In this document: in pieces, positions 842-43,647 of the stretch
How positions within the stretch are numbered: the first letter of the stretch is position 1
Layout of the letters: the number at the start of each line of letters is the position of its first letter
Virus record (IMG/VR): IMGVR_UViG_3300032050_000004
Coordinates: 1 to 64,000 of that record
Length of the DNA: 64,000 nt
Strand: one strand, 5' to 3'
The notes under the pieces: generated by a model
Seen by the model: only the letters and a program-made list of their open reading frames with translations
Databases searched by the model: none
Told to the model about the DNA's origin: nothing
Made by a program: the position numbers and the translations under genes

Positions 842-862
842 ATTTGTTTTTTGTTTTTTTTA

Positions 863-1435: not shown

Positions 1436-1436
1436 T

Positions 1437-1470
1437 AAAAAAAAAGGGCTCGGAAACCCGAACCCTTTTT
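1437..1470. terminator. Bidirectional intrinsic terminator
   Basis: A-run, GGGCTCGG/CCGAACCC hairpin, T-run. Confidence 0.8.
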
Positions 1471-1841
1471 CATTTAATTTTCTTAATCTAAACACACATT
1501 GTTGTTTTTACAAACTTCCTTGTTTTAAGGAAATTACGAATAATTGTAATTTTAGAGGTAAGTCCATTCACCTTTCGATGATTTCTGACACTCTCCATCA
1601 TTTCTTCGTGTATTCGCAAATTAGCATTGTCATAGTTCGCAGTTTTTAAGTTACTTCCAAACATTGACTTAATAATAATTTCGTTTTGTTCGTCTATGCT
1701 TCTTTTCATTTTAATTATTTTAGTTTGTTTCAATACGGATTTTATTAGAAAAGGTTGAACGAAAATAATAAAATTTTATAATTTATTATAATTTTATTTT
1801 AATTAAATCTAAATCATCTCATTATCAAACTATTTAATTAA

Positions 1842-1935
1842 GAAATGTAAATTACTTTTTTCAATTCGTATATCTGATCGAAAATAACCCCCTGTTTTCA
1901 CCAGACACGGGCTTCTGAGTTCCAGAAACGGGTAG
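1842..1935. repeat. Phased intergenic element copy B (right half plus arm)
   Basis: ATGTAA 1845, N16, CGTATATCT ending 1875; CTG 1892, CAG 1902, CAG 1923; terminator at 1941-1973. Confidence 0.85.
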
Positions 1936-1993
1936 AAAACAAAAAACCCCCAACTTTTCAGTTGAGGGTTTTGTATTCACCTTTGATAAATTA

Positions 1994-2878: not shown

Positions 2879-3916
2879 AATTTATTCTATTTTTTAATTA
2901 AAATTATTATTCTTCACTCTCTCCTACACCTACATCAATATAATCTATAACTTCCATACCATCCATTTTGGGGAGAAACAACTCCTCATCAGTATATTTA
3001 TCTTCCTTACGGAAACAAACCACAACTGAACCATCAACATCATCCAAATCAAATTTTGTATCATCAAATTCAATTAATGCTACAATAGTAACTACTGCTC
3101 GTTTAAGTGCCATAATTATTATTTTTTTTTAATCAATACGTTTATATTGAAAAAAGGTTTAAAATCTAATGAATAACCTTGAAATGCTCGTCATCAGTTA
3201 GGTGAACCCAACGAAATTCCATATTGTTATTTGACGCTATTCTCAATCCCAGCCAAACACCCGTTTTATTTTCAAAAAAAACCCGTTCCGTTATTGCTTC
3301 AACCACCCATTTCTCTTCTTTATGAATTGTCTTTTCTTTTGCAATTTCTGATATTGGTTCGAGTTTTACTTTATCACCTGTTCTTATATCTAACATAATT
3401 ATTTATTCTATTATCATTACGGATAAAATATAGAAAGGTCTAAAATAAAATTAATTATCTTTATTTTCAATAATTGAAACCATTTCTTTTAAATGATTTT
3501 CCAAATTGATAAGTTCATTTCTTATGTTTTGAATTTCCTCTAATGCTTTATCATATTTTCTGTTTGAGGTGAAAATGACTATTCTATCGCATTGAACTGG
3601 TATTGTCTTATTTGAAAGAACAATGATGTTTTGTTTAAGCTGATTGCTTCTTGTCATTTTATGTTGAGTTTGGTTTTTGTTTGTTCGATTATTTTTAAGC
3701 AAAAATCCTTCGCACTTTGTGGTGAACCATCAACAAACTCACAAGAGAAAGTATGATAATTAACTTCACTCACATAAACCTCATAAACAATAAATGAAAA
3801 TTTTAACTTCTCTATTTTAAGTGTACCATAATGCAATCTTGAATATCCGTTGAATTTTGACTTATCAAAATTGTCAAATTCAATTTTATAATTATCCATT
3901 TTATAGATTTTGTGTT

Positions 3917-4363
3917 TTACAATTTAGCAAGAAGAACATCCTCGTACTTGTAGTGTTTAGTCCCTTGTGTTTCCAAGAAATCAATCCTGTTCTTGAACCT
4001 TTTATTCATTGTATCCACAATAGTATAAACCCCACTCTTATGTCCTGCACCACTAATATACACCTTATCCCCATAATTGAAAACTCCTCCCCATCTTTTG
4101 AGCAAATCCCTTGAAACTGCAATCCATTTATGTTCCGACGCTTTATTTGGATTGATTTTGTACATACCAGCAGTTACCAAAGGGTCTTCATCACATTGAT
4201 TTACCACAGCATTATACATAGTTGCAGTTACCTTTACTGAATTTTGACTCTTAATTAAATCCTCTAATTGGTTAAGACGCTCATCATTTTCTTGTTGAAC
4301 GACCAACATATAAGTTGTATTTATAGCACTCAATACCATAAGGATATATACGGCTTTTTTCAT
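3917..4363 (-). CDS. 3D-domain (MltA-like) peptidoglycan hydrolase with N-terminal membrane anchor
   Basis: VTATMY, IAVSRDLL, YGDKV and VDTMNKRFKNRIDFL (three-Asp motif); hydrophobic N-terminus. Confidence 0.8.
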   Translation of the reverse strand: MKKAVYILMVLSAINTTYMLVVQQENDERLNQLEDLIKSQNSVKVTATMYNAVVNQCDEDPLVTAGMYKINPNKASEHKWIAVSRDLLKRWGGVFNYGDKVYISGAGHKSGVYTIVDTMNKRFKNRIDFLETQGTKHYKYEDVLLAKL

Positions 4364-4416
4364 AGTGGTTGGTTTTTAATCAATACTGATAAAAAACAAA
4401 AAGGTTTAAGAAAATA

Positions 4417-4525
4417 AAAATGTAAATTATCTTTTTAGGATCGTATATCTTGTCTGGAATTTGACACCTAGGGCCAGCAGTCCCGTCCAGTCAATTTCAG
4501 GATTCCACCAGAGAAAATCAGGACA
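4417..4525. repeat. Phased intergenic element copy C (right half plus arm)
   Basis: ATGTAA 4420, N16, CGTATATCT ending 4450; CAG at 4478, 4488, 4498, 4509, 4519; terminator at 4525-4561. Confidence 0.85.
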
Positions 4526-5513
4526 AAAAAAAAGAGAGCCAATTTCTTGACTCTCCTTTTTGAGATACGCAATGTTTTTCAATTCAAGTAATCAAACCCA
4601 AAGTGAATAAATCCCATTTCAATTAAATCATCATCAGACATCTTTTTAGGGTTTCTCCAAAAGTTAGGTTCTTGTTTATTCTCATCCTCTATAAGTTCAC
4701 TAATCCTTTTCAAAGCACCTTCATAGGTGAATTTCTTATCACCATCCGTTCTTTCAGTTTCAATAAACTCATATTTAATTCTCATATTAATCCATGTTTT
4801 GTTTAGCAAATTCAATCAATTTTTTAGCAAGTTCATCATCCAATTCATCCGTTACATCTTCATTATCCTCATCACGAATTTCAATTTCTTTGACAAAATA
4901 ACTATCGTAATCATCGTTGATAGTTACATGATAACAAGTATCCTCAACTTCAATTTCAAACTTGTGTGTTCTATTGATTACCTTGCTTATCAGTTCCATT
5001 GTTTATACAATTTTATAGTTTGTAATTTCTTCATCACTTATTTGGTCAAAAACATAATCTTTATCCAAACCCCTTACCGAAACCGAATCCACAATTTCTC
5101 CTTGTTTGTTAACCCAAATCTGAATATAAAAAGGTTCAGTATACCAAAGGTTGTTTTTTGCAACAGCACTCCAAGTTGTTTTGTGATGGTCAAATTCCTT
5201 TTTGCTAATGTTCATAGTGTTTGGTTTTTTTAATCAATACGAATAAAAAATAGAAAGGTTTAATTTTTTAGATTATTTTTTAATATATTTGTCATAAAAA
5301 ATTCCAAATCTGCCCAAAGTAGTTTTTCAGGAATCAAATTTGTATCTACACAACTCTTTTCATGTTTTGAATACATATATTCTATGAAATCACTCCAACA
5401 TGATTTGCAAACATTTCCAATAGATTGATAAGTGTTATTACAATTTTTGTTTTCACACCCTATTCTTGAACATTTGTTAAAATCCATATTAATACCAATT
5501 AGGATAGAAAAGG

Positions 5514-5909: not shown

Positions 5910-6125
5910 TTAAGATTGTAAAAATCTTTTGTCCTTAACAAACTTCAAATGTCTTGCTTCATCCTTTGTCAAACCCACGAACTCACTTGGGGAGAATGAA
6001 ATCTCATCGGGGTAATAGTCAAAGAGATATTCTTCCACCCCATTTTCCAAAGTAACGTGAACTTGGGGCATAGGGTCAAATAAACTTTTAGGCATTGCCG
6101 TAATTCGTGCTGAAATTATTTTCAT
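5910..6125 (-). CDS. Conserved small phage protein
   Basis: LFDPMPQV...LFDYYPDEISF..SEFVGLT pattern; clean ORF behind a class-1 promoter. Confidence 0.55.
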   Translation of the reverse strand: MKIISARITAMPKSLFDPMPQVHVTLENGVEEYLFDYYPDEISFSPSEFVGLTKDEARHLKFVKDKRFLQS

Positions 6126-6467
6126 AGTTATCTTGTTTTTTAATCAATACGTTTTTAGGGAGAAAAGGTTTAAGATTTATAAATTATAAATGAGTAAAAC
6201 TCCCACAACCCATACATTGAATATAAGGTTTACCGCTATCTTTTATGGTAGGACTTTCCTTTGGTAAGATTATCCATTCAGTACCTTTGCAATCGTAACA
6301 CTCGCAATTAGGTAATCTCTCATCAAGGGTAAGCTGGTTAGCTATTCTTTCAGGATATACTGATTTTAACACATCAGCTTCAGGAATTTCTACTAATACC
6401 GATTGATAGAACTTTGACATAATTGATTTTTTAATCAATACGAATCAAAGTAAAAAAGGTTTAATTT

Positions 6468-6731
6468 TTAATTTAAAATTATTTGAAAAAATTGAAATCT
6501 TTCCGACTTAAATGCTTTTATATTATCGGTAGGATTTATTTCATCACCATTTCTATCAACTATGGTAACTGCCATTTCGTTGGTATTTAAGGAATCGGTG
6601 ATATACTTTAACTTATAAACTCTGTTCTTTTGGATCCACCTATCAGGTGTGAATTTTGGTAATGAATCATCTATACAAAATGCGAAAACATTAACGAAAG
6701 AAGCTGGTGCTATTAAATCTGCCATACCCAT
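6468..6731 (-). CDS. Hypothetical protein with late-type TATTTAT upstream
   Basis: ORF track; ATAAATA on + at 6741-6747; divergent from the DUF5856-like gene. Confidence 0.5.
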   Translation of the reverse strand: MGMADLIAPASFVNVFAFCIDDSLPKFTPDRWIQKNRVYKLKYITDSLNTNEMAVTIVDRNGDEINPTDNIKAFKSERFQFFQIILN

Positions 6732-6785
6732 ATGTTTATTATAAATAGTTTTTTTTTCGGTCTATTTATAATAAAATTAAAAAAA

Positions 6786-7157
6786 ATGCACCACAAAAGC
6801 GTAATAAAAATAATGAATTTTCAGCAACAAATGAGAATTCTTCATTGGCAAACCACTTCTTTTGCTCGTCATAATGCCTATGGTGGCATATATGATAGCA
6901 TAGATGATTTATTAGATAGATTTGCTGAAATTTGTATGGGTAAATACGGAAGAATTGAGCTTAATGATGAAATTTCTGAGCTTAAACTTAAAAACATGAA
7001 AGACCTTTCCATAAATTCTTATTTAAATGATTTTTGTGAATTTCTTGTTGAATTAACCGGTGAATTTGACGATGAAAAAGATACTGATGTGTTAAATATC
7101 AGAGATGAAGTTCTTGCTGAAGTAAATAAATTAAAGTATTTACTTACTCTTAAATAA
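6786..7157 (+). CDS. DUF5856 ferritin/Dps-like four-helix protein
   Basis: LHWQTTSFARHNAYGGIYDSIDDLLDRFAEICMGKYGR and C-terminal LNIRDEVLAEVNKLKYLLTLK; TATTTAT at 6763; terminator at 7177-7206. Confidence 0.75.
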   Translation: MHHKSVIKIMNFQQQMRILHWQTTSFARHNAYGGIYDSIDDLLDRFAEICMGKYGRIELNDEISELKLKNMKDLSINSYLNDFCEFLVELTGEFDDEKDTDVLNIRDEVLAEVNKLKYLLTLK

Positions 7158-7587
7158 TACACTATGATTTAAGCTGAAAGGGGAGGAAGTTTTTCCTCCC
7201 TTTTTCATTTTTATATTTTTAATATGATACTATAACCCTTTCAAGTTTTTCTACAACCATACAATTACCAACTTTTTCTGCTTTCATTTTTGCAATCCTT
7301 AATGCTCTTTCATAAGTCATTTTTGCACCGTCAACTTTAATAGTGTCAATTACATCTCTGCGAGTAGTCATTACTGTTTTGACAAGTCGAATTATTTGTA
7401 TCGCTTCACAAACAACTGAAATGTCATTAATAGTTTCATTTTTTGAAACTGCAATCTCTGTAGTTTCCAATTTAGAGCCGAATAAATCAAACGAGTTTTC
7501 CATTTTTTCCTTTTTTTAATCAATACGCTTTTTAATTAAAAAGGTTTAAGCTGAATCGAACTGACTAAACCTAAACTTTTCAAATTT

Positions 7588-7730
7588 AGTTATACGAAAG
7601 AAAAAAGATATTTTACACTTTATAAAAATGTAAATTAGTTTTTTAAGATCGTATATCTGATTATAAATATCCACCAGTTTTCACCGTCGACTGCCAGAAA
7701 TTTCACCGTAAACCAAAATACCGAGTTTGG
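7588..7730. repeat. Phased intergenic element copy D (both halves, 9-bp spacer)
   Basis: TACG 7593, N16, TTACAC 7613; ATGTAA 7628, N16, CGTATATCT ending 7658; CAG 7675, CCG 7684, CAG 7695, CCG 7706. Confidence 0.85.
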
Positions 7731-7824
7731 CACATTTTTACTTCCGAAAATGTCTTGTAAAAGATTAACATAAAAAAGAAAAAGCCGCATCTCTGCGGCT
7801 TTATCAATATAATCATTCCTTTGA

Positions 7825-8418
7825 TTACACAATCTTTATTTTACGATTATCAATGTAAATGAATTTTACATTATCAATCCCCACATTGAAAGTTCCAAAT
7901 GCCTCATCACCTCTAATTCCCAAATTGTAACTTCCTTTTGTAGATTTAATCAAAAATGTTTTTAATTGCTCTAATTGAAATTCAGTCGCCTTAACTCCAT
8001 CAACATAATACTCCGTAAAAGTACTCTCGTTTGAATTAGGATTAGTATAAACCCTCAAATACTTAATTGCAGGATTATCTTTCTTTACAGCAATAACATA
8101 GTTATCTCTGCCGTCAGATGATTCCACATAAGTTGATTCAGGTTTATATTCACCCTCAATACCCTTTTGCTCCCTTTGATTGTTACCTTTAGTAGAAGCA
8201 CTTGTATTGCAACCAAAACCCCACTTTGAAACTTTACGAACTCTACCAATAAAAGGATTACCCCTTTTATTCATTTTAGGTTCAGTGTCCGAAACCATAC
8301 TTCCATAAGTATGACTACCACCACGAACATTTTCCATAAAGGAAATAAATTCATCTTTACTCATTACTTCGTGAGAAATCTGATTGCAGATTTGCTCCAT
8401 TCTTTGTTCTTTGGTCAT
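7825..8418 (-). CDS. Conserved phage hypothetical protein
   Basis: 197-aa ORF containing TEPKMNKRGNPFIGRVRK...NNQREQKG; class-1 promoter at 8443. Confidence 0.6.
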   Translation of the reverse strand: MTKEQRMEQICNQISHEVMSKDEFISFMENVRGGSHTYGSMVSDTEPKMNKRGNPFIGRVRKVSKWGFGCNTSASTKGNNQREQKGIEGEYKPESTYVESSDGRDNYVIAVKKDNPAIKYLRVYTNPNSNESTFTEYYVDGVKATEFQLEQLKTFLIKSTKGSYNLGIRGDEAFGTFNVGIDNVKFIYIDNRKIKIV

Positions 8419-8561
8419 TTTGCGATTTTTTTTAGGTTAATATCAATACGGATTTTTTTGTAAAAGGTTTAATAAAACCCCCACATATATAATACGCAGT
8501 AACACCACCAAATCTTTAGTGTAAAATTAAAATATTTTTTAACTTATTGAAAATCAGTATA

Positions 8562-8593
8562 AAAGAAAAAGTCCCGGACTTCGGGACTTTTTT
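8562..8593. terminator. Bidirectional intrinsic terminator
   Basis: AAAAAGTCCCG-GACTT-CGGGACTTTTTT. Confidence 0.8.
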
Positions 8594-8989
8594 CTAACCA
8601 CTATGAAACACAATAAACAATTATAGAACCGAAACAAATATACACAAATTACTTATTCTTAACACTATAACTGTAAGATGAAAAAATAGTCCTATTGACA
8701 AATTCTTTTGTGCTTTCGCTAAATTCAAAACATTTCAATCCGTGAAGAATATTTTTTTCTCCAATACAATCCACTTCTTTCATAAGAAAGGTAATGAATT
8801 TCTCATACACAATATCTTCTCTCATATTATATCTTTTGCTGATGTGAGCAGAAACCTTTTTTAGAGTTGGATGCTTTGTAACATAATCCTCAATCACTTT
8901 TCTTTGGGTAATCATATTGAGTTTAGTTTTAGTTTTACTTACAATACGGATAATTAAAAAAAAGGTTTAAGAAATTATTTTACAGTTAA

Positions 8990-9203
8990 ATCCTGAAGAA
9001 CAGTAAAAAACTGGATAATTTAATTTTTAGATATACGATTGTTAAAAGTTATTTTACATATTAGGAGCAATTCATTTTACATATTAGGAGCAATTCATTT
9101 TACATATTGTAAAATGTAAATTAGTTTTTTCTTTTCGTATATCTGATCGAAAATGTGCCTGCTGTTCGAGCTGGAGCATCGCCTCAAGTTCAGGAATTAC
9201 AGC
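8990..9203. repeat. Phased intergenic element copy E (both halves; spacer contains a 23-bp tandem duplication)
   Basis: AGATATACGA 9029; TTTTACATATTAGGAGCAATTCA at 9052-9074 and 9075-9097 plus a partial third copy; TCGTATATCT 9135-9144; terminator at 9204-9233. Confidence 0.85.
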
Positions 9204-9257
9204 AAAAAAAAATCCCCGCTGATTTGCGGGGATTCTCAATTCTATAACAATGATATA

Positions 9258-9557
9258 TTATTCTTCTTCTTTGTATTCTCCTAATTCACTTTTAGGAGCC
9301 ACCAAAACATTACCGAGTATTTTAAGATTTTTCAAATTGTTTTTTTCACAATATACCTTACTTGCTATTTCATTTAAAGGTAAGTCAAAATACAAACCCT
9401 TACTATTCATTACCATAAATTCATCTCCGCAAGGCATTATACTAATCGAACCCGATACAATATCTTCTAACTCTTCTTTGGAATATTCCAAATCATTTTC
9501 GGGTGTACTATCAATTATTTTACTTTCACAAGTTATTATTTTTCCCATAGTTTTCAA
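9258..9557 (-). CDS. DUF3846-domain protein (divergent paralogue)
   Basis: YSKEELEDIVSG...MVMNSKG...LPLNEIAS...ILGNVLV parallels the DUF3846 pattern. Confidence 0.55.
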   Translation of the reverse strand: MKTMGKIITCESKIIDSTPENDLEYSKEELEDIVSGSISIMPCGDEFMVMNSKGLYFDLPLNEIASKVYCEKNNLKNLKILGNVLVAPKSELGEYKEEE

Positions 9558-21957: not shown

Positions 21958-24177
21958 ATGAAAAAAAGTAAAAAACCGAATGGTTATTGGACTAAGGAAA
22001 GGTGTCATCAAGAAGCTTTAAAATATAATAGCATAAGTGATTTACAGAAGGCAAATGGAAGTGTTTGCCTTATAGCTCGCAAAAATGGTTTCATGGAGGA
22101 AATATGTAGCCACATGGAAAGGCTAATAAAACCTAATGGATATTGGAACAAGGAGAGGTGTCATGAAGTGGCCCTAAAATATGAGAGCAGGGTTGAATTC
22201 CAAAAAAAAGACCATAGTGTTTACCAAGCGGCCAGAAGAAAAGGTTTTCTTGATGATATATGTGGACACATGGAAAAATTAGTTAAACCTAATGGATATT
22301 GGACACAAGAAAAATGTCACGAAGAAGCATTAAAATATAATAGAATAGTAGATTTTCAAAGAGGATCCTCATCGGCCTATCATGCTGCTTTAAAAAAAGG
22401 ATTTTTAGATAAAATATGTGGTCATATAAATTATGTATGTACCCCACATAAAAAGGTTGATTATGAACATCATAAAAAAATTGCTCTAAATTATAATAAT
22501 AGGCGTGATCTTAATAAGAACCATCCTTCTATTTATCAAATGATAATAAAAAGGGGATGGAAAGAACTTTTAGACCACATGGAATATATTTTTTTACCTA
22601 ATGGATATTGGACAAAAGAGAAAATTAGTGAGATTGCATTGAAATATGATAACTTCAAGGATTTTAAAAAAAATGATTTAAGGGCTTATGAGGCTATGTG
22701 TAAAAAAGGTTGGAAGGAGGAGTTGTGTCAACATTTCAAAGAAAATCCAAATGATTGGACAAAAAAAGAAAACTGTATAAGAGTTGCTTTAGAGTGCATA
22801 ACAAGAAGTGAATTATATAAAAAATTTCCCGGTGCATATCATTCAGCATTAAAAAATTGTTGGTTAGATGAAATATGTCAACACATGGGTCCCAAATCTT
22901 CATTAAATTATAGATATATATATGCATTTGAATTTGATGATAATCACGTATATGTTGGGTTGACGCATAACATGAACAAAAGATTATTAGATCACATTTC
23001 TGGAAAAAACTCCAAAAAATCTCAAGCGAATAAGCACTGGGAAAAAACAGAGTCTTGTTTTGAATTTAAACTAGTATACCCTGAAAGCTTTGATATGAAT
23101 GAAGCAGGATTGAAAGAAAATGAGGCTATAGAATTTTACAAAAAAAATAATTGGATTATTTTAAACAAAGCAAAAGCCGGTGGTTTGGGGGGGATGAAAG
23201 AAATCAATACTGAAAAGAATTTTTTAAAGATAGCATCAAAATACAAAACTTATTCAGAATTAAAAAGTAAAATTACCTCCCATTTTTTAACTAAGGCTAT
23301 AAAAAATGGATGGTTAGAAAAAACAGGTCTTATAGATGATAGAGTTAGAAAGTGGAATAAAGAGGATGCTTTTGAAGTTGCAAAAACCTGTAAAAACATT
23401 GCTGATTTACAAAAAAAATATAATGGTTTGTATAAGTATCTTAAAAAAGAGAATTTTTTAGAGGAAGCAATGTCACACAAAGTCATTAGAGTACCTTATT
23501 CGCAGAAATATACTCTTGAACAATGCACCGAAACTTGTGCTAAATTTAACAGTAAAAATGAATTTCGTAAAGCTGAATATGAAATGTATGAATGTTGTAG
23601 ATCAAACAAATGGCTTAAACTTATCAAAACTAAGATCGAAATAGAAAATAAATTGAATTATAAACCAAAATTGGCAATTAAAATAAATAAAAAAATAGAA
23701 TCTTATGATTTTGAGAATATAATAGAAATCGCTAAAAGTTATAATAAAAGATCAGATTTCAAAAATGATTATCCGGATATATTCAAAAAAGTAATTAAAA
23801 GTTGTCATAGAAATTTAAGAAAACAAATAATTGGTCATATGAAAAACGACTTGGATGGAAGAAGTAAGAAAAAATCAATCTGGACTTACGAAAAATGCTT
23901 GGAAGAGTCCAAAAAATACGATAGCAGGTGGGCTTTCCGGAAAGGCAGCAAGACCGCTTATGAACAATCAATTAAGAATGGTTGGGTTGCCGAATTTTTT
24001 CCTGAAATCAAGAAAAACAAATCCAAATGGACCTACGAAAGGTGTTTTGAGGAATCCAAGAAATACAAGACGAGAATCGAATTCATAAAGAGAAGCAAGA
24101 CTGCATATGTTAATGCATTCAAAAACGGATGGATTGACGACTTCATTCCCTCTTTAAGGAAACTAAAAGCAAAATAA
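21958..24177 (+). mobile_element. Free-standing GIY-YIG homing-endonuclease-like gene with 12 tandem helical repeats
   Basis: Central YIYAFEFDDNHVYVGLTHNMNKRLLDH; six W(T/N)KE.C...A.KY....F......Y..A...GW repeats on each side. Confidence 0.8.
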
Positions 24178-24755: not shown

Positions 24756-25886
24756 TTAAACTTCTCCGTATTCTATATTGCCCAATCTATTTAGCCAACC
24801 TTTACCATGAACGGCAAAAGTATCAGAGGATTTATATCTGATGGCTCTTTGTTTTTTTATTTGTTTGAATAATTCTTCTTGGTTTTGTTTATTGGCTATT
24901 TTGATCCAGATAACAGAAAAGGGATCATCAGCCGAAGAAATATCAACCCCCATATTCATTAGGGCATTTCTAAGGGATTCTTTGGTTCCGGAAGAACCTT
25001 GGTTTACGCAACCATCATATAAAATATTAGCTATGGACTGATTTGAAAAATGATGAAGGTTGTTTTGATCCCAATAATCTTTCTTATAGATTTTCAATGC
25101 ACTGTCATAGGACAGGTTTCTCATATCTTCTGCTTTTGGCAATCTACCAAGGTATTTTGCTAAAATAGGAGCTGAGATACCATATTTGGTTCCGACAAAT
25201 CTTTTACCATAACCTTTAATATTGATCCAGTTTCCTTTATCTTTTCTATCACCTGAATAACCAGCTTCATATATTTTAACATGTTTTTGGGCTTCATTGA
25301 AAGAGGATCTTCTTGTAGATGTTGGTAAAATTCCACTTTTTTCTTTAGTATCTTGGGGTTCTTGTATTTGTTCTTGATCTTGGTTTTGGACAACTTGAAC
25401 AAATTCCTTTGCCATAACCGGATCAATTTTGTTTTGAGGAGATCCAACCAAAGTAGAAAGAGAAGCTACACCCAAAAACACTGCAGCAGTAGAGATTATA
25501 ATTTTCCTTCTAATTTCTTTAGGAAGGTTTTTAATCTTCTCTAAGAACTTATAAAAATACTCTTGGACTTTTTCTTTAGGTAGTTTATCAACGAAGGATT
25601 TAATTTTCTTTGCTAGTTCGTCTGCAAAAGTTTCTTTTGAGGATGCTCCGGACAAATCCCATTGAAAAGTCAAAGGTAATTCATCTGGAGTGCCCTTTTT
25701 AATTTCTGGATCCCATTCATAGGTATTTGGACTTGTCCATTTACCATTTTCTTTAAGGAGGGAATATAAACCGTCAAATATCTGGTTAAATTCTCTTTCC
25801 AGCATTAAACTCTGAAAATCCTTATCCATAGAGATTATATTTTCTCTGATAAGGGATCTTAGTTTATATTCAGAATTTTTTTTCAT
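24756..25886 (-). CDS. Glycoside hydrolase family 108 lysozyme with tagged N-terminal extension and one TM helix
   Basis: EAGYSGDRKDKG, GTKYGIS, IYKKDYWD, LYDGCVNQG, C-terminal GKGWLNRL; likely start is MKKNSEYKLRSLIRE. Confidence 0.85.
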   Translation of the reverse strand: MKKNSEYKLRSLIRENIISMDKDFQSLMLEREFNQIFDGLYSLLKENGKWTSPNTYEWDPEIKKGTPDELPLTFQWDLSGASSKETFADELAKKIKSFVDKLPKEKVQEYFYKFLEKIKNLPKEIRRKIIISTAAVFLGVASLSTLVGSPQNKIDPVMAKEFVQVVQNQDQEQIQEPQDTKEKSGILPTSTRRSSFNEAQKHVKIYEAGYSGDRKDKGNWINIKGYGKRFVGTKYGISAPILAKYLGRLPKAEDMRNLSYDSALKIYKKDYWDQNNLHHFSNQSIANILYDGCVNQGSSGTKESLRNALMNMGVDISSADDPFSVIWIKIANKQNQEELFKQIKKQRAIRYKSSDTFAVHGKGWLNRLGNIEYGEV

Positions 25887-26017
25887 AGTCTCAAATAAAT
25901 AGGATAAAAAACCTTTAAAAAAAAACAAATTTTCATAGAAAAAAAACACAAGATACAATAAAAAAAATTATATTTATTATATAGACAAAACAATTTTCCA
26001 AACACTATAATTTAAAA

Positions 26018-27442
26018 ATGAATAATAATGCAGAGAGCAGGTTAAATGATCTTGAGAGTTTTTTAAGTGAATCAGCGATAATTTCAAAAGCAGATTCAAA
26101 GGGCAAGATAACTTATGTAAATAAAAGGTTTGAAGAAGTTTCTGGATGGAAGCTTGAAGAGGTATTGGGCAAGGACCACAATATTGTAAATTCCGGAAAG
26201 CATCCAAAAGAATTTTGGTCGGAGATGTATAGGGTTGTTACAAAAGAAAAAAAGGTTTGGAATGCAGTATGCACCAATATTTCAAAAAGCGGTGAATTAT
26301 ATTACGTTGATACGTTCATAAAAGGGAGTTTTGATACTGAGGGTAATTTGACTGAATTCATGTCTATTAGACAAGATGTTACAGACCTTAAGAAAAAGGA
26401 ACTAGAAATTCACAATAGAATGAGTGCAATAAATAAATCTAACGCAGTTATTGAGTTTGATTTAGAGGGTAAAATTATTTTTGCCAATAATTTATTTATA
26501 GAAACTATGGGATATTCTTCACAGGATGAAATAATTGGGAAGCATCACAGAATTTTTATAGACGATGAATACGCAAAAAGTGATGATTATTTTCTTTTTT
26601 GGAAAAAGTTAAGAGATGGTATATTTTTTTCTGGTGAAATTTCTAGAATTCGAAAAAATGGGTCTTTAATATATTTACAGGCCACTTACAATCCGATTAT
26701 TGATGTAGACGGTAAGATTTATCGTATTATGAAAATTGCCATTGACATTACTAATTCATATGAGCAAAAGAAAGAAATCGAAAAGAAAAACACTTATTTA
26801 GAACATGCAGCAAAAATATTGAGACATGATATGCATTCTGGTATCAATACTTATATGCCAAGAGGTTTAAGTTCTTTAGAAAGGAGATTAAAACCTGAAG
26901 ATATTATATCATTAAAAATTGAGGCACCAATTAAAATGATTAAAGAAGGTTTAAAACATTCTCAAAAAGTATATAAAGGTGTTTATGAATTTACAAATTT
27001 AGTTAAAAAAGATGTTGTTTTAAACAAATCGGAATGTGATTTAAAAAATATATTATCTGATTACTTATCATCAACAGCCTATAGTAGCCAAGTTATTATT
27101 GATAGTTTACCAACCATTGAAGTTAACGAAGCTTTATTTTGTACTGCAGTTGACAACTTGATTAGAAATGGTTTAAAATATAATGATTCGGATACTAAGT
27201 TTGTTAAAATATATTCAGAGGGAAATTATATTTATATACAAGATAATGGTAGGGGAATCACACAAGAAGATTTTGATCACTTATCTAAACCATATATCAG
27301 AAAAGAAGGGCAAAAAGAATCTGGTACTGGTTTAGGGTTAAATATTTGTGTTGCAATTTTAGAGGAACACGGATTTGTTATTACCTGTGAGAAAAATGAA
27401 ATAGGAACAAAAATGAAAATAAAAACAAAACAAACAAAATAA
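26018..27442 (+). CDS. PAS-PAS sensor histidine kinase
   Basis: Two PAS/PAC domains; H-box ILRHDMHS; N-box DNLIRNGLKY; G1 DNGRGI; G2 GTGLGL. Confidence 0.92.
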   Translation: MNNNAESRLNDLESFLSESAIISKADSKGKITYVNKRFEEVSGWKLEEVLGKDHNIVNSGKHPKEFWSEMYRVVTKEKKVWNAVCTNISKSGELYYVDTFIKGSFDTEGNLTEFMSIRQDVTDLKKKELEIHNRMSAINKSNAVIEFDLEGKIIFANNLFIETMGYSSQDEIIGKHHRIFIDDEYAKSDDYFLFWKKLRDGIFFSGEISRIRKNGSLIYLQATYNPIIDVDGKIYRIMKIAIDITNSYEQKKEIEKKNTYLEHAAKILRHDMHSGINTYMPRGLSSLERRLKPEDIISLKIEAPIKMIKEGLKHSQKVYKGVYEFTNLVKKDVVLNKSECDLKNILSDYLSSTAYSSQVIIDSLPTIEVNEALFCTAVDNLIRNGLKYNDSDTKFVKIYSEGNYIYIQDNGRGITQEDFDHLSKPYIRKEGQKESGTGLGLNICVAILEEHGFVITCEKNEIGTKMKIKTKQTK

Positions 27443-27455
27443 AAAAAACAAAAAA

Positions 27456-27893
27456 ATGATAGAATCAATTTTATTAGTAGATGATGAGGATTTATTCCAC
27501 TTAGTATTTGAGGACGCTTGTTCATTACTTGATATAAGTTTGTCTTTAAACTCATTAAATAGTTCTGACGAAGCTGCTAAACTATTTCAAAAATGGTTTC
27601 AAAGTGGTAATGATAATAATAAGCCTGAATGCGTATTTGTTGACTTAAACATAATTGGTAGTTCTTTTGATGGTATTGAGTTAATTAGAAAAATTAATTT
27701 TGAATATGGCAATAACGTAGTTGTAGGTATTATTTCATCATCAAATGAACCGGAAGAACAAGCAAAAGCAGTTCAGGCTGGTGCTCAATTTTGGATTATT
27801 AAATCTGACGATATTGAGCCACGTTTAGATGAGTTCAGAAAAGATTTTGAAGGTTATAAAAAAAGAACCTTACCATTTAAAGTTTATAAATGA
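27456..27893 (+). CDS. Stand-alone response regulator receiver (CheY-like)
   Basis: LLVDDED; phosphoacceptor VFVDLN; ISSS; conserved K in WIIK; no output domain. Confidence 0.9.
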   Translation: MIESILLVDDEDLFHLVFEDACSLLDISLSLNSLNSSDEAAKLFQKWFQSGNDNNKPECVFVDLNIIGSSFDGIELIRKINFEYGNNVVVGIISSSNEPEEQAKAVQAGAQFWIIKSDDIEPRLDEFRKDFEGYKKRTLPFKVYK

Positions 27894-28564
27894 TAAGATT
27901 AAACCAAAATAGTGAAGATGAGTTAATTAGAATTCTTGATTCCAAAAGTATTGGACTTGAGGGGAATATTATTAAATTATTTGAAACTGATAATGATGAA
28001 TTTAAGTCGTACTTAACTAGGTGTGTAGAAAAGGATAAAGAATCAAGACGTAAAAGATTAGAGATAACAAAAAAAGTTCAAATACAAAATAATGAGTTAT
28101 CTAATTTAAATCTAGAAAATCAAAAAATGTTAGAAAATCTTCAGTCAACATTAAAAGAAGCTGAAGAACAAAAAATAAAAATTAAAGCACAAAACGAAGA
28201 GTTAATTGAATGGAGGGTAGAAAACGAAAAAATTCAACAGGATCTACAGAAGGAAATGATTAAATCTGAAAATGCAAGAATCCAAGCAGAAGAAGCGAAG
28301 AAAAACGCAATAAATGATTTAGATATACTCCAAAAAAGAAACCAAACAGAACTTATTTCCACAATCGTTAAATTTTCCTTATGCATCATTGTTGGTGTTG
28401 GCATTTTTACTACAGGGGTATATATCTTTACTGTTATACAGGGCAAGGATACTCAAATTATAGGTGCCGTTTGGTCAAATACATTTGGGATTCTTTTAAC
28501 CAATGCTTTTTCTATTGTTGGAACCATCATGGGTGTTAAATATGCTTTGGAAAAAAAAGATTAA
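27890..28564 (+). CDS. Coiled-coil protein with two C-terminal TM helices, translationally coupled to the receiver
   Basis: ATGA overlap; heptad-rich E/K/Q core; two hydrophobic segments. Confidence 0.7.
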   Translation: MIRLNQNSEDELIRILDSKSIGLEGNIIKLFETDNDEFKSYLTRCVEKDKESRRKRLEITKKVQIQNNELSNLNLENQKMLENLQSTLKEAEEQKIKIKAQNEELIEWRVENEKIQQDLQKEMIKSENARIQAEEAKKNAINDLDILQKRNQTELISTIVKFSLCIIVGVGIFTTGVYIFTVIQGKDTQIIGAVWSNTFGILLTNAFSIVGTIMGVKYALEKKD

Positions 28565-28610
28565 AGTATAAAAAAATAGAAATTTGGTTGGCGGGGCTTC
28601 GCCTTTTATT

Positions 28611-29582
28611 TTATATACAGGACTTTATGAATTCAACAATTTCAAAAGCAGAGTTATTGAAATTAGAATTATCTGGCTGAGAGAATTTTATCCATTTATC
28701 TAATTTCGATTGGTCAATTTTATTGGTGATATAATATCCTTTATCAGAAAGAGATTTAGCATTAAATTTCTGTTCGAATTGATTTTCAATAGGAATAGAC
28801 CAGATTTTCTTATTTAGATACAGGGCTTCAGAAATAGTAGAAAAACCTGAATTGGTTATGACTCCATAACAATTTTTAAATTCTGAAACAAATGATGTCC
28901 TATTAATCGGCATCAAAACGATGTTATTTTTTTTATATCTATAACTTTTAACGTCAGGGTGAAATACCTGAAATCCAGAAATTTCTTCTGGTAGTTCTAG
29001 ATTTTTAAAGCAATCAATAATATCTTTTAAATTCCAATGAGATAAATAAACTAGAACAAATTTGCTTTGGGATGTATTTTTAGTAAGGTTTAGATCTATT
29101 ATTGGTCCAAATACATTTTTATTTTTATCTGGAAAGAAATCTATTGAAATATTAATATCAGTTGGAGAGAAAAAATTTAGGAAAAACTTTTTAAATGGAT
29201 TTTTGGTTTTCTTTTTTATAAAATTCTGGTTGCTTATACCGATTGATTTGATGTTATTTAATTTAGCTCCGTAAGCAGTTATAGGTTCAAAATCTGAAAT
29301 TACCAAGTCATAATCTTTGAAATTAACTGTTTTTAAATCTTGGGAGAATTGTTGTAAGTCAAAGTTCTTAAAAGATTTGAGATAATTAATTTTACCTGAT
29401 TTTTTAAATAAGAGGTCAAATCCCTTAAATTCATATTTAAGATTTAATATATAGGATAATTTATTTTGCTTACCGGATACCAGAATATCAACTTGATGAT
29501 TTTTTTGTAGAAGGGATATGATTTGGGTACTTCTGGTTATATGACCATTTCCAGTTCCTTGTATTCCATATAATATTTTCAT
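28611..29582 (-). CDS. MJ1255/VC2487-family glycosyltransferase (GT-B)
   Basis: MKILYGIQGTGNGHITRS, VISDFEP, GFSTISEALYL.K, P...QFEQ..NA. Confidence 0.85.
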   Translation of the reverse strand: MKILYGIQGTGNGHITRSTQIISLLQKNHQVDILVSGKQNKLSYILNLKYEFKGFDLLFKKSGKINYLKSFKNFDLQQFSQDLKTVNFKDYDLVISDFEPITAYGAKLNNIKSIGISNQNFIKKKTKNPFKKFFLNFFSPTDINISIDFFPDKNKNVFGPIIDLNLTKNTSQSKFVLVYLSHWNLKDIIDCFKNLELPEEISGFQVFHPDVKSYRYKKNNIVLMPINRTSFVSEFKNCYGVITNSGFSTISEALYLNKKIWSIPIENQFEQKFNAKSLSDKGYYITNKIDQSKLDKWIKFSQPDNSNFNNSAFEIVEFIKSCI

Positions 29583-30328
29583 TTGGGGTGTTTATAAATT
29601 TTCCAATCGGAGTCAATGTTTTCAAGTTCTAAAGAGGTTAAATTTTCAACCCAATCACCGGAGTTCATATAAACAACTTTATGATCTTCGAAAATGTATT
29701 CTTTAATATTTGGTTGATGTATATGGCCATTAACAACGTAGTCAAATTTCTTTTTTGATGCGGTTTCACAGGCAATACTCTCATAGTCTTTTATATATTT
29801 TATTGCAGTTTTTACGTTTCTTTTGACATGTTCAGATAGGGAATATTCTTTAATACCTATTTTTCTGCACAAGTTATTATAAACTTTATTGAATTTAATT
29901 AGATAGTCATAACCTTTTCCTGCTATTTTGGAAATAAATTTTCCAAATTTGTATTGCATAGCGATATCAAAAACATCACCGTGAAATACCCAGTAATATT
30001 TTCCATTTATTTCTAATTCTAAACTATCTAGTTTATGTAAATTATTTATTTCGAGAATATCAAATTTTCTCAAAAATTCATCATGGTTTCCGGTCAAATA
30101 ATAAATTTTTGTACCGTTGTGTAAAAATTTAAGTATTTTTCTAATTACTTCGAAGTGTGAATCTGGAAAATATTTTCTCTTAAAATTCCATCCATCTAAA
30201 AAATCGCCAAGGATGATTAAATTCTTTGGTTCTATGGATTTTAAATATTCACAAAGTTCTTCAGCGTGACAACCGACTGTACCTAAATGGACATCACTTA
30301 TGATACAATACTCTAATTTTCTTTTCAA
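29579..30328 (-). CDS. UDP-2,3-diacylglucosamine diphosphatase-like (LpxH-like) metallophosphoesterase
   Basis: ISDVHLG, GDFLDGW, GNHD, HGD, GHIH, NSGDWVE; TTG start. Confidence 0.85.
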   Translation of the reverse strand: MKRKLEYCIISDVHLGTVGCHAEELCEYLKSIEPKNLIILGDFLDGWNFKRKYFPDSHFEVIRKILKFLHNGTKIYYLTGNHDEFLRKFDILEINNLHKLDSLELEINGKYYWVFHGDVFDIAMQYKFGKFISKIAGKGYDYLIKFNKVYNNLCRKIGIKEYSLSEHVKRNVKTAIKYIKDYESIACETASKKKFDYVVNGHIHQPNIKEYIFEDHKVVYMNSGDWVENLTSLELENIDSDWKIYKHPK

Positions 30329-31031: not shown

Positions 31032-31258
31032 AAAAATAAATAGGATTCTAAAATACGTTTTACAAAAAATTAAATTTTCATATTATTTATCAAAAAAAAC
31101 AAAACAAAATGGGAAGAAGAATAAAAGAGGGTAAAAAACCCGGAAACAAGAAAAACATAGCAAAAAACGCTAAGAGAATAAAAAGCAATATTGAGATCCT
31201 TAAGGGGTTAAAATAAAAAAAATAAAAGCCGTCCAATGGGATGGCTTTTATAATTTAA

Positions 31259-35740: not shown

Positions 35741-35780
35741 AGTAATAAATATTAAATAAAATTAAACTATTTATTTCTGT

Positions 35781-38653: not shown

Positions 38654-39484
38654 ATGAAAAACACAGAAATCTACAATGAATTAGTCCAAAAGATGAGAGA
38701 ATTCTTTTTGGCAAAGAACTTCAAAGAAGTTCCTGCACAGTCACGTCTGTCAATTTTAGCAGCGTGTGAAAATCCACATTCAGTAAAAACATTTGAATAT
38801 GGTGGTTTATTATGGCCCTTACCACAAACAGGTCAAATGTGGTTGGAATATGAACTTCTTAAAAATCCAGATTGGAATGGTGTTTTTTGTATTTCTACTT
38901 CTTATAGAGAAGAAAAAAATCCAATTCCCGGAAGACATGAATTGATTTTCCCAATGTTTGAATTTGAATCTAAGGGTGATATGAAAGTTCTTTTAAAATT
39001 AGAGAGTGAATTATTAGCACATTTAGGATTTGATTCTCCAATAGAAGTTAATTATGAAGATGTTTGCGAGGAATATGGTGGAGTAAAAATTTTAGAAAAT
39101 GAGCATGAAACAAAAATGTGGGAAGAAAAAGGATCTGTAATTTCACTTCAAAATTTCCCTTTAAGAACAAATCCTTTCTGGAACATGAAACATAATTCAG
39201 AGGGTATTTTCAATAAAGTCGATGTTATATTATACGGTCAAGAGACAATAGGATCTGCAGAGAGAAGTTGTGATGTAGAAAAAATGAGAGAGATGTTTTA
39301 TACCATTGAAAATGGTGGTTATTGCAATAAACTTTTTGAATTATTCGGTAAAGAGAGAGTAGAAAATGAATTAGAAGAGTTCTTAAATTTATATTTCTTT
39401 CCGAGATTTGGTGCTGGAATTGGTATGACTAGATTGGCAAGAGCATATCAATTAATGAAGGAAGAGAAATTAGTTATGGCATAA
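38654..39484 (+). CDS. Class II aaRS (Asn/Asp/Lys) catalytic-domain-only paralogue, asparagine-synthetase/EpmA-like
   Basis: Motif 1 MREFF...F.EV; motif 2 YREE...RH...F.M.EFE; motif 3 RFGAGIGMTRL; 276 aa with no anticodon OB domain. Confidence 0.85.
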   Translation: MKNTEIYNELVQKMREFFLAKNFKEVPAQSRLSILAACENPHSVKTFEYGGLLWPLPQTGQMWLEYELLKNPDWNGVFCISTSYREEKNPIPGRHELIFPMFEFESKGDMKVLLKLESELLAHLGFDSPIEVNYEDVCEEYGGVKILENEHETKMWEEKGSVISLQNFPLRTNPFWNMKHNSEGIFNKVDVILYGQETIGSAERSCDVEKMREMFYTIENGGYCNKLFELFGKERVENELEEFLNLYFFPRFGAGIGMTRLARAYQLMKEEKLVMA

Positions 39485-39534
39485 TAAATAATCCCCCCCA
39501 AGAAATTGGGGGGTTTTTTTATCTATTTATTTGT

Positions 39535-40105: not shown

Positions 40106-42514
40106 TTATTTTTCAATAACAAATCTTGATTGAAGAGTTTTTTCATCACCCAATATTACTAATTGATATAATCCATTACTTAATTTATTGAGGTCAAAAA
40201 CTAAATAATTTATATCTTTCAATAAATTTAAATTTTGACTAAACACCTCTCTTTGATTAGTATCATAAATTTTTAACAAATAATTTTCTTCTTTTTCACT
40301 AAAAATATTTATTTGAACTAGACCGGTAGAAGGATTGGGAAATAATTCCAAATGTTCTTTTGGGGTACTTTTTATTTCTCTGCAACTAAAATTTATAGGT
40401 AATGCTTTATTGAAACTTTGACCACAATCGTTTTTACTTTTTACTCTAATTCCATTTGTAGAATTTGAACCGAAATTTACATTTACATTTGTAAATGGAG
40501 TTGTCAATTTATTTGTGGTGGATGTAATTCCACCAGCAGTTATAGTTGATCCGAAAGGAGCTATCCACTCGTAATTAATTGCATTATAAACTGGTAGAAT
40601 TGAATATTGAACATTTTGTTGACCGGCACATGGATTTGCATTTCCTGTAATTACTCCGGGTAATTGAGGTATTGATTTTATTAATTGAATTCGATTGCTA
40701 CTAGATCCACATACATTACTTCCGTTTACTTGCAATGTAACATCAGTAAAATTATTATCAAAATTGATATAGACGGAATCTGTTCCTTGTCCAAATGCAA
40801 TAATTCCTCCATTACCTATAAAACTCCAATTATACTGAACTCCTCCAACTTCATTTACGCTATAAATCTCAGCAGAATTACAAACTCCATAAAAATTGCC
40901 TTTAATTTTACTCGGAGTAGATGGTGCAGTTTTTACCCAAACAAAAAGGGATTCAGCAGGAGAAGTTCCACAAGAGTTATTTGCTGTAACTACCAAATGT
41001 CCATTGGTAGTTCCAGCATTTACGCTAATTGAATTTGTATTTGAATTTCCGACCCAACCACTAGGTAAAATCCAAGTATAAGAAGTTGCTCCGGGAACAG
41101 CAGTACAAGTATATGTAGCTGTATTACTAATATTTAAACAAATAGTTCTCGGTCCTAATATTGTATCTGGTTTAGTTGGACATGGTAAACAAGGCGACAA
41201 ACAACTTGATGTGTTAATGTTGTTTAACATTAAATTTGTTGGTTGTGGACCGAATCCGTTATTAAAATTAATTCCAACACTACTTAACAAATGACAATAA
41301 GACATTATTGTTCCACCATTGCTTGGTATTGGTCCCACTAAACACGAACCACTAGAATAACCAGCTGTTGGACCACATCCATCTATTGCGGTGTTATTAC
41401 CATTCCAAACACAATCATGTGTGTGTCTTGAACCTAATAGATGACCTTGTTCATGACTTAAAACATTTACTGTCCAAGAATAAGTTGGAACCACTTGATA
41501 AGTTGTATTGATATCGGAATATGCCATTTTGTATCTCGATTGAGATGAGCATAAGCCATCGACGTAAGCAATTCCTCCACTACCTGTATATCCAACTAAA
41601 TGTGCAAGATCACCATTGAAAGAAGTTCTATAGTTTCCAAATTGATTTAAGAAGTCACCAGTACTTGGTCCTGTATAAGGATCTGTTGTTGTCCAAACGA
41701 AAATAGTTGATAAATTAATATTTATTCCATCGTTTGCATACAGTGTTGCAACTTGGTTAAAAGCTCCTTGAATATATGTGTTTACGTTTGCAACATTTCC
41801 TTTATTTAAAAAAATATCATAATCAACCTCATAATAAAAATCTACACAATTTATTGAAGTCGTATTTATTGGATATTTAGATATTTGATTATTTGAAATT
41901 TTTCCGGGAACATTCAAATAATCACAATTATAATTTGGGATGTCGACTAAATTTACATCTCCATACATAATATATCGATCTTCTTTTAATAATTTACCTA
42001 TTGTTACATTATCAAAATCGTCGCTATAAAATCCAATAATTTCATTATTAGAAAATGTAAATGATGCAATTGAATAATAATTTCCATTCACTATGCCACG
42101 ATAGTGAACAATAGTATCTTTAATTTCAAAACAAGAGTTTTTATCTGTACTTAAATAAAAATCATCAGATAAAATATCTGTTTTATATAATAATAATTCA
42201 ATACAATAATTTTCTACTACAGGTATTTTTAATCTCAGTAAATCAGGTTGAGATTCTATTATTTGATTTTTTACAGAGTTGTCAATGCTTAATAATGTAT
42301 AATCTCCAAGTTCATTGAAAATGTTTTCTGGCTCTCTTTCCCTAGACAATTGAAAGGGTTCAAAAGTTTGAAAATAATTATTTGCATCTACCAGAGTATT
42401 AATTTTCTTTGACACTTGTCCAATCTGTTCTCTATCTTTAGAATATGAATCTATTGGTAAAAAGACAATAAATATCCATGCAATTAAATTGCTAAGAAGA
42501 CTAAAATTTTTCAT
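40106..42514 (-). CDS. Secreted M12/reprolysin-like zinc metalloprotease with PKD-like repeats and a T9SS type A C-terminal domain
   Basis: Signal peptide; HEQGHLLGSRH followed by Met-turn IMSY; three Ig-like repeats; CTD LFPNPSTG...YDTNQREV...LNKLSNGLYQL...RFVIEK. Confidence 0.88.
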   Translation of the reverse strand: MKNFSLLSNLIAWIFIVFLPIDSYSKDREQIGQVSKKINTLVDANNYFQTFEPFQLSREREPENIFNELGDYTLLSIDNSVKNQIIESQPDLLRLKIPVVENYCIELLLYKTDILSDDFYLSTDKNSCFEIKDTIVHYRGIVNGNYYSIASFTFSNNEIIGFYSDDFDNVTIGKLLKEDRYIMYGDVNLVDIPNYNCDYLNVPGKISNNQISKYPINTTSINCVDFYYEVDYDIFLNKGNVANVNTYIQGAFNQVATLYANDGININLSTIFVWTTTDPYTGPSTGDFLNQFGNYRTSFNGDLAHLVGYTGSGGIAYVDGLCSSQSRYKMAYSDINTTYQVVPTYSWTVNVLSHEQGHLLGSRHTHDCVWNGNNTAIDGCGPTAGYSSGSCLVGPIPSNGGTIMSYCHLLSSVGINFNNGFGPQPTNLMLNNINTSSCLSPCLPCPTKPDTILGPRTICLNISNTATYTCTAVPGATSYTWILPSGWVGNSNTNSISVNAGTTNGHLVVTANNSCGTSPAESLFVWVKTAPSTPSKIKGNFYGVCNSAEIYSVNEVGGVQYNWSFIGNGGIIAFGQGTDSVYINFDNNFTDVTLQVNGSNVCGSSSNRIQLIKSIPQLPGVITGNANPCAGQQNVQYSILPVYNAINYEWIAPFGSTITAGGITSTTNKLTTPFTNVNVNFGSNSTNGIRVKSKNDCGQSFNKALPINFSCREIKSTPKEHLELFPNPSTGLVQINIFSEKEENYLLKIYDTNQREVFSQNLNLLKDINYLVFDLNKLSNGLYQLVILGDEKTLQSRFVIEK

Positions 42515-43618: not shown

Positions 43619-43647
43619 CTCAAATAAATAGTGTCTTAAATATTAAA

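Follow-up and report, generated by a model that had tools for sequence, protein, structure and literature searches.

Phage lysis timing is usually viewed as the product of an intrinsic holin clock with few sensory inputs, examples of which are T4-type inhibition and, for lysogeny, quorum and arbitrium signals. Can a phage also encode a complete signalling relay, and which process would such a relay control? This question is raised by three adjacent genes in a 64,000-nucleotide stretch of DNA (hereafter the window), which represents the first 64 kb of the 222,069-bp IMG/VR virus record IMGVR_UViG_3300032050_000004 (G000). The genes encode a sensor histidine kinase (HK), a single-domain response regulator (RR) and a coiled-coil membrane protein (CC; Table 1). 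Invariant catalytic motifs indicated that the trio is, with high probability, a genuine phosphorelay. The complete chain, in which this relay senses redox or energy state and RR acts on CC to tune lysis, is the reading developed below; as a whole it is rated slightly short of even.

Predicted structure of the kinase, receiver and coiled-coil protein

The initial annotation had placed three genes at positions 26018-28564, and three co-directional open reading frames (ORFs) were located exactly there. HK and RR are separated by an A-rich gap of 13 nt. The TGA stop codon of RR (27891-27893) and the ATG of CC (27890-27892) overlap as ATGA, and an RR/CC overlap of 4 or 1 nt was kept in 43 of 45 distinct relatives, in agreement with the translational coupling that had been noted for the third gene.

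Pfam searches of HK yielded two PAS domains (approximately residues 21-125 and 143-245) and a HATPase_c domain (residues 374-471; 55.4 bits versus a cut-off of 26.4), all above gathering cut-offs. The H, N, G1 and G2 boxes, annotated as intact, were all located, and an F box was found as well (H box R269-H270-D271-M-H-S, N box 379-388, G1 box 409-414, F box 419-426, G2 box 436-441). These motifs were invariant or nearly so throughout the family, with R269-H270-D271 and residues D379, N380, R383, N384, D409, G411, G413, G436, G438 and G440 invariant. In an AlphaFold2 (AF2) model with a pLDDT of 83.8, the domain order was PAS-helix-PAS, followed by a dimerization and histidine-phosphotransfer (DHp) domain and a catalytic and ATP-binding (CA) domain. 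PAS1 spanned residues 21-120 of the model and was connected by the linker helix to PAS2 (143-243), two DHp helices (245-290 and 302-329) and CA (338-469). H270 was positioned in the middle of helix 245-290, with helix 302-329 after it, an arrangement that had no Pfam HisKA-type support.

No transmembrane (TM) helix was predicted in HK, consistent with the initial description of the module as soluble. This description did not extend to most of the relatives' kinases, which carry one or two N-terminal TM helices and in many cases also a GAF domain. The window HK is the shortest, soluble form in the family, and its solubility is peculiar to its sub-lineage.

RR proved to be an Asp-bearing receiver without DNA-binding output, as annotated: Response_reg was its sole Pfam domain (35.0 bits versus a cut-off of 30.2), and the acceptor D63, the acidic pair D9/D10, S94 and K116 were invariant in 44 sequences. 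The RR alignment showed a mean column identity of 89% and a conserved C-terminal tail (R137, F141, K142, Y144). As a receiver RR is divergent, its top match in PDB being 3ilh (E 3.7e-5). Since it has no effector domain, RR must act via a protein partner.

A candidate for this partner is CC, for which the AF2 model (pLDDT 85.5) comprised a small head (residues 1-35), a long helix (36-183) that continued into TM1, a loop of five residues and TM2 (189-221). Hydropathy and the model placed the C-terminal TM hairpin at about residues 153-185 and 189-221. From this arrangement, an N-in/C-in topology with the five-residue loop outside is inferred; the coiled coil would be cytoplasmic, since CC has neither a signal peptide nor an N-terminal TM segment. 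For the same reason, a role of CC as an i-spanin was rejected. No family match was obtained for CC in Pfam, PHROG, PADLOC or NCBIfam. Its length of 224 aa, with a cytoplasmic part of ~150 aa, is large for a holin. Complex prediction for RR and residues 1-110 of CC, with custom alignments, gave a score of 0.23 against a mark of 0.32, a result that points neither way.

The PAS domains had initially been likened to those of NifL and Aer. Among PDB entries, PAS1-PAS2 matched PAS-A-PAS-B of MmoS (3ewk; E 4e-23), Aer (E 9e-13) and NifL (E 1e-9), and HK matched the NCBIfam model nifL at E 2e-30, under the full-length cut-off of that model. The flavin-pocket residues of Aer that are common to MmoS are G28, H53, N85 and R115 (with T18), of which H53 and R115 are uncommon among flavin-PAS domains (PMC9668731). 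HMMER alignment identified G29, H54, N87 and R118 as their counterparts in PAS1 of HK, with S19 replacing T18. Of 58 family kinases, 53 had all four residues, and the other five were second-copy paralogues. These results corroborated the NifL/Aer likeness, whereas the likeness to BdlA proposed beside it is unsupported, and lent circumstantial support to the proposal that the phage senses host redox or energy state. From the pocket residues, flavin-based redox or energy sensing by PAS1 is a reasonable expectation.

A second kinase gene was observed upstream of RR-CC, behind a gene for a secreted 204-aa signal-peptide protein, in loci L018-L022, L043, L058, L062, L069 and L081 (about positions 6000-9400 in each locus). 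Absence of the flavin-pocket residues from the second-copy kinases suggests a second, different input.

HK might alternatively signal in the manner of NifL, by redox-dependent protein binding without phosphotransfer, in which case RR would bind HK but would not accept phosphate. When the HK model was compared with PDB by Foldseek, the top match was NifL from the NifL-NifA complex (9qq6; E 6e-26), followed by WalK, LOV-PAS-HK and YF1. The nearest whole fold is thus that of a protein that signals by binding, and HK residues 240-345, which include the DHp region, had no match among the HisKA-type models of Pfam, even at E 10; both observations count against phosphotransfer. However, strong purifying selection has kept H270, the N, G1, F and G2 boxes and RR residues D9, D10, D63, S94 and K116 invariant, which speaks against non-catalytic signalling, as this would not need such motifs. 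Binding without phosphotransfer is considered improbable, and phosphotransfer from HK to RR is retained as the preferred reading.

Distribution, conservation and origin of the trio

HK had 5547 scored homologues, with one group at 89-100% identity and then a large group at about 80% (477-712 aa). Clustering at 90% identity divided the RR family into 3862 groups, each about 145 aa in length and 88-94% identical to the window RR. CC, clustered at 50% identity, had only 206 clusters in a set of 1.84 billion representatives, and its Atlas clusters were 96-100% viral. A pattern scan of IMG/VR identified 138 loci with relatives at 67-82% HK identity, on contigs of up to 304 kb. The same patterns, run on a single representative genome of each prokaryotic species, picked up no HK relative above 29% identity. 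Among 401 Bacteroidota genomes, the top HK match reached 32% and RR matches 25-37%, and the CC profile yielded only marginal coiled-coil noise. Whether homologues lie mainly on phage contigs had been posed as a check of the annotation; the 138 viral loci, against no close relative in these cellular genomes, indicated that they do.

Among GenBank phages, no RR homologue was found and HK gave only partial PAS matches at 30-36% identity, several of them in records resembling host fragments. A DNA search of GenBank phages returned a sole match, to 243 nt of the neighbouring GH108 gene (70%), in the 635-kb uncultured phage LR745206.1. The earlier statement that complete signalling operons are unusual in phages therefore holds for GenBank phages but not for uncultured freshwater jumbo phages, in which the trio is abundant.

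When the window was compared with its relatives, synonymous sites were saturated (proportion of synonymous differences, pS, 0.61-0.71), so that the high protein identity reflects constraint rather than recent transfer. For unsaturated pairs, ratios of nonsynonymous to synonymous substitution rates (dN/dS) were 0.119 for HK, 0.053 for RR and 0.164 for CC, values that mark all three as real genes under purifying selection. Genes common to G000 and its relatives were typically 30-50% identical, versus 90% for RR and 78% for HK. Recent capture from a host was rejected, in view of the saturated synonymous sites and the lack of a close relative in the cellular genomes searched. A class II aminoacyl-tRNA synthetase-like ORF (276 aa; window 38654-39484, + strand; tRNA-synt_2 in relatives) is as conserved as the kinase, with 80% identity to its counterparts in the distant relatives.

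The order HK-RR-CC occurred in every locus of the 138-locus set that had enough flank, in each case with none of the window's neighbours. Gene-order analysis showed neighbouring genes shuffling around an invariant trio, the order of which persisted down to 30-36% CC identity. In a marine contig, a degenerate receiver-like gene preceded a CC homologue and no kinase was detectable. This gene aligned with RR at an hhalign probability of 70% (E 4e-5) and shared with it the strand of the acceptor Asp and a C-terminal PF-x-(V/I)-Y-(K/R) tail. Because a receiver-like gene and CC persist without a detectable kinase, the RR-CC pair looks like the core of the module.

These data also bear on a role of the trio in host takeover, in which HK, RR or both would supply, drain or divert phosphate in the two-component pathways of the host, or would themselves control its envelope, type IX secretion or motility, CC being a mere membrane anchor or scaffold. 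Single-domain receivers often serve as sinks or connectors, most of the relatives' kinases are membrane-anchored, and envelope genes occur nearby (LpxH-like and MJ1255 glycosyltransferase genes in the window; Por_Secre_tail, OmpA and pectate-lyase genes in L102). However, since no receiver from the 401 Bacteroidota genomes exceeded 37% identity to RR, mimicry of a host RR is unlikely, and the RR-CC coupling is far better conserved than any envelope-gene neighbour. Host takeover is regarded as an unlikely explanation.

Could the trio be a host-derived passenger, or an assembly chimera, without a role in the phage? Two-component genes are typically cellular and the record is a metagenome assembly. 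Genes for a tail sheath (phrog_23, E 3e-62) and a virion structural protein, together with those for two DNA polymerases, a ribonucleotide reductase and a helicase, mark G000 as a tailed phage; its completeness is estimated at 87% (CheckV). GC content was 25-33% throughout the contig and the same in the trio region as in the rest. Near-identical sequence was found in lake and freshwater metagenomes from at least 13 studies. Contigs from independent runs spanned the GH108|HK junction (X10 record 1, X5 record 18), and independent contigs ran from HK-RR-CC into the glycosyltransferase and phosphoesterase genes that follow (X6 record 27, X5 record 23). A separate 38-kb contig, L101, with a kinase of 93% identity, had the same gene order as the window. 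Independent contigs across both junctions excluded an assembly chimera, and the region is not host chromosome in a chimeric contig, an outcome that the initial annotation had named as fatal to its reading. With no close relative in the cellular genomes searched, 138 viral loci and dN/dS values of 0.05-0.16 in addition to the uniform GC content and bridging contigs, a passenger or chimera is barely credible.

In lake metagenomes, summed contig depth rose two- to three-fold over the kinase core and RR (window 26900-27900) and assemblies broke there, because co-occurring related phages share near-identical segments.

The host of G000 is probably a member of the Bacteroidota, since G000 encodes two proteins with a type IX secretion system (T9SS) Por_Secre_tail sorting domain (E 9e-11 and 1.5e-13) and trio-bearing relatives encode CHU_C and Por_Secre_tail proteins. 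The sorting domains imply that these two phage proteins are exported via the T9SS of the host.

Lysis genes around the trio and the proposed relay

In the window, the trio is preceded by a divergent gene for a GH108 muramidase-like protein. TM prediction assigned to this protein a cytoplasmic N-terminal part of 127 aa, an Ala/Gly/Ser-rich TM segment (residues 128-149) and an external catalytic domain. The TM segment is reminiscent of a signal-anchor-release segment. Adjacency of the GH108 gene and the trio was kept in L101, and in the window lineage the GH108 protein may work together with the trio.

In most relatives, the trio adjoins an endolysin gene. One group of neighbouring genes (cluster 3) encodes a PG_binding_1+GH19 endolysin (phrog_181, E 2e-66); another (cluster 7) matches an endolysin PHROG (phrog_33083) and in some loci carries a fused PG-binding domain. 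The endolysin gene lies either divergently upstream of the trio or 10-14 nt downstream of CC, the latter spacing being found in 14 distinct loci. In L091, HK, RR, CC, a PG_binding_1+GH19 endolysin and a Phage_holin_10 protein (E 9e-19) are encoded on one strand, with a CC-lysin gap of 11 nt and the holin gene second in line after CC. A GH19 or cluster-7 lysin was present within two genes of the trio in 21 of the 29 full-flank context classes, and within three in two more (the window class has GH108), although these classes are not phylogenetically independent and the counts consequently overstate support. Hydrolases of four unrelated types (GH19, cluster 7, GH108 and GH46) were found beside the trio, which, even allowing for this non-independence, is hard to ascribe to inherited synteny alone.

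In the proposed mechanism, HK would read the redox or respiratory state of the infected cell through flavin bound to PAS1, as its pocket residues suggest. It would then autophosphorylate on H270 and donate the phosphate to D63 of RR, a step to which the intact, invariant catalytic motifs point. Gene coupling and the persistence of RR-like and CC genes without a kinase suggest that RR would act on the coupled CC, whose TM hairpin would reside in the inner membrane. Finally, judging from the gene neighbourhood only, CC would speed up or delay membrane permeabilisation and muramidase release, through holin and endolysin in relatives and, in the window phage, possibly through the GH108 enzyme tethered to the membrane. 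The odds that CC is the target of RR are put at about even, and a link of the trio to lysis is given the same odds. Holin triggering depends on membrane energisation, so that an energy-state input to lysis makes biological sense. Placement of the relay in a late lysis operon fits a post-translational output.

The annotated role of the module in tuning a late event such as lysis timing thus has circumstantial support in the adjacency of an endolysin gene in most relatives, and of endolysin plus holin genes in one lineage, but the window phage itself departs from this pattern. Its GH19 endolysin, Amidase_2 and multi-TM holin-like genes lie in a canonical lysis cluster ~75 kb from the trio, at about 101.4-103.8 kb of the contig, and GH108 is the only such gene adjacent to it. 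Along with the non-independence of the context classes, several further observations weigh against control of lysis by the trio. In several relatives, including L018-22, L083/84 and L102/103, there is no lysin nearby. CC belongs to no known holin family in Pfam, PHROG or NCBIfam and is not classed as a holin. Its fold is uninformative, as no PDB entry reached E <= 0.001 in Foldseek, which turned up nothing but long helices of a generic kind and a match to the TM hairpin of HtrII that was not significant. No RNA run was present among the sequencing runs found to carry the locus.

The loci that lack an adjoining lysin would also be compatible with a conflict module, in which the trio senses a disturbed cell (a competing phage, a satellite or host defence) and CC blocks superinfection or kills the cell early. 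A layout of sensor, transducer and membrane effector is typical of such systems. In L105 (3410-6345), a distant trio is followed by a Peptidase_C14 gene (caspase-like, E 5e-20), which overlaps it at the stop/start codons and has a weak PADLOC caspase match, and then by a 118-aa ORF and a gene for a GH46 lysozyme-fold enzyme. In contrast, HK, RR, CC and the GH108 protein had no PADLOC match at E 0.01, a flavin-PAS input would more readily report metabolic state than detect nucleic acids or capsids, and in one large lineage the trio, endolysin and holin genes form a tight array on a single strand. A conflict module is judged rather unlikely, and tuning of lysis by a redox- or energy-sensing relay is kept as the working explanation.

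The endolysin in the canonical lysis cluster of G000 is without the PG-binding domain of its relatives, and a secreted Endonuclease_NS gene (G000 103793-104398) follows the cluster.

HK, RR and CC look like one transcription unit, with a promoter-like site before HK and a terminator-like hairpin after CC, both of them consensus matches (Table 1). As the -10 element of the promoter-like site ends 7 nt before the kinase ATG, the leader would be very short or absent. Sigma-70-like sites were no commoner in the region than in shuffles, and this one is to be read as a consensus match only.

The TATTTAT word that had been noted upstream is present, but a promoter role for it was not supported. The word occurred 97 times in the window, versus 61 +/- 9 expected. 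Across the whole of G000, it lay within 80 nt upstream of 77 of 265 genes, with 60 of 83 occurrences in the 10-30 nt bin. A motif near CTATTTAT(T/A)T, 10-30 nt upstream of many G000 ORF starts, probably represents a phage promoter class; its copies in the window include 25895-25901 (-), 31036-31042 (-), 35768-35774 (+), 39524-39530 (+) and 43624-43630 (-). The GH108 gene has the TATTTAT motif at the typical distance, whereas the kinase operon does not. TATTTAT as an operon-specific promoter was set aside, as the word is common, is located 41 nt rather than the usual 10-30 nt upstream of the start and has a different context.

Downstream of the trio, a convergent gene pair (window 28611-30328, - strand) encodes an MJ1255/VC2487-family glycosyltransferase (TIGR00661, E 9e-51) and an LpxH-like UDP-2,3-diacylglucosamine diphosphatase (E 5.5e-14). 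The pair, conserved in L101, possibly represents auxiliary genes that modify the envelope or lipid A. On the other side, a 739-aa protein with a GIY-YIG nuclease domain (window 21958-24177, + strand) contains many repeats of ~55 aa (NGYWTKE.C.EEALKY...) and matches phrog_20046 in five stretches (E 2e-97). Within a few kb of its trio (69-4582), L101 has four genes that are absent in the window: one IS605 OrfB/TnpB-like and three for homing endonucleases of the HNH/NUMOD4 type.

Table 1. Features of the trio, its surroundings and the full record; positions are those of the window unless another sequence is named.
Feature	Position	Strand	Basis or remark
HK, sensor histidine kinase, 474 aa, no TM	26018..27442	+	Pfam, motifs, AF2 model
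PAS1 of HK, putative flavin adenine dinucleotide (FAD) pocket, aa 22-124	26081..26389	+	HMMER alignments to 3ewk, 8dik
RR, single-domain response regulator, 145 aa	27456..27893	+	Pfam, alignment
CC, coiled-coil membrane protein, 224 aa	27890..28564	+	AF2, hydropathy, alignment
Best sigma-70-like promoter match TAGACA-18-TATAAT	25982..26011	+	consensus match, 11/12 positions
TATTTAT word	25971..25977	+	41 nt upstream of kinase start
Terminator-like GC hairpin GGCGGGGCTTCGCC + T-run	28590..28613	+	26 nt past CC stop, before convergent genes
GH108 muramidase-like protein, 376 aa from ATG	24756..25886	-	divergent; Pfam GH108 E 1.5e-15, phrog_315 endolysin E 2e-21
Por_Secre_tail protein 1	40106-42514	-	T9SS sorting domain at protein end
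Por_Secre_tail protein 2	G000 66749-66967	-	T9SS sorting domain at protein end
Canonical lysis cluster of G000	G000 101013-103796 (L104 2013-4797)		103- and 114-aa TM proteins (-), 198-aa GH19 endolysin, Amidase_2

Significance and comparison with known systems

The most far-reaching version of this reading is that a virus-specific phosphorelay, widespread in freshwater Bacteroidota jumbo phages, gates holin/muramidase lysis by the respiratory redox state of the host and does so through a new response-regulator output; this version is tentative and, as it stands, doubtful. If it is true, lytic phages actively gauge the energy state of their host before bursting the cell, and a two-TM coiled-coil partner represents a new output class for single-domain response regulators. 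With thousands of trio variants in lake metagenomes, such a relay could influence when cells burst and how carbon is released in freshwater Bacteroidota populations. The window kinase, soluble and only 474 aa long, is amenable to direct biochemistry.

In literature on phage-encoded histidine kinases, two-component systems and lysis-cassette kinases, no description of the trio was found; coverage was incomplete and novelty is unproven. A survey of jumbo phages mentioned only a divergent receiver, which was never linked to kinases (PMC7824862). The parts are of known kinds (a PAS kinase, a receiver, an Aer/MmoS-type pocket); it is their virus-specific assembly with a two-TM coiled-coil protein amid lysis genes that was not found described.

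On the input side, the trio resembles Aer, MmoS and NifL in the alignment and pocket residues of PAS1, and NifL likewise has a PAS-PAS-DHp-GHKL architecture. HK differs from Aer and NifL in being phage-encoded, with an intact kinase core and a receiver of its own, and its output differs both from the chemoreceptor domain of Aer and from the NifA binding of NifL. An output-less receiver that works by phosphorylation-dependent binding to a protein target, as RR presumably does, is known from CheA-CheY-FliM. There, the kinase is CheA rather than a PAS-DHp-CA protein such as HK, for which the presumed downstream target is a novel two-TM coiled-coil protein.

For the proposed control of lysis, two functional analogies are available, neither of which is a relative of the trio. 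LytSR/LytST of Firmicutes (PMC3507848) is also a two-component system, is tied to the holin-/antiholin-like Lrg/Cid proteins and murein-hydrolase activity, and responds to energy state and oxygen. However, LytR and LytT are LytTR DNA-binding proteins that act on chromosomal transcription, whereas the trio is viral, its RR has no output domain and the sequences are unrelated. In phage T4, holin T and the antiholins RI and RIII provide signal-dependent lysis timing via the membrane lysis machinery, after translation (PMC11413866), as proposed for the trio. T4 has no kinase or receiver, its signal is superinfection and the proteins are unrelated, and an action of CC on a holin is only inferred. 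Retention of a histidine kinase by a phage, as in the trio, has a precedent in phiCDHM1, which carries the agr genes for AgrB, AgrD and the kinase AgrC (PMC3901668). Those genes represent host-derived quorum sensing without a phage response regulator, whereas the trio would constitute a complete, phage-specific relay with a membrane partner.

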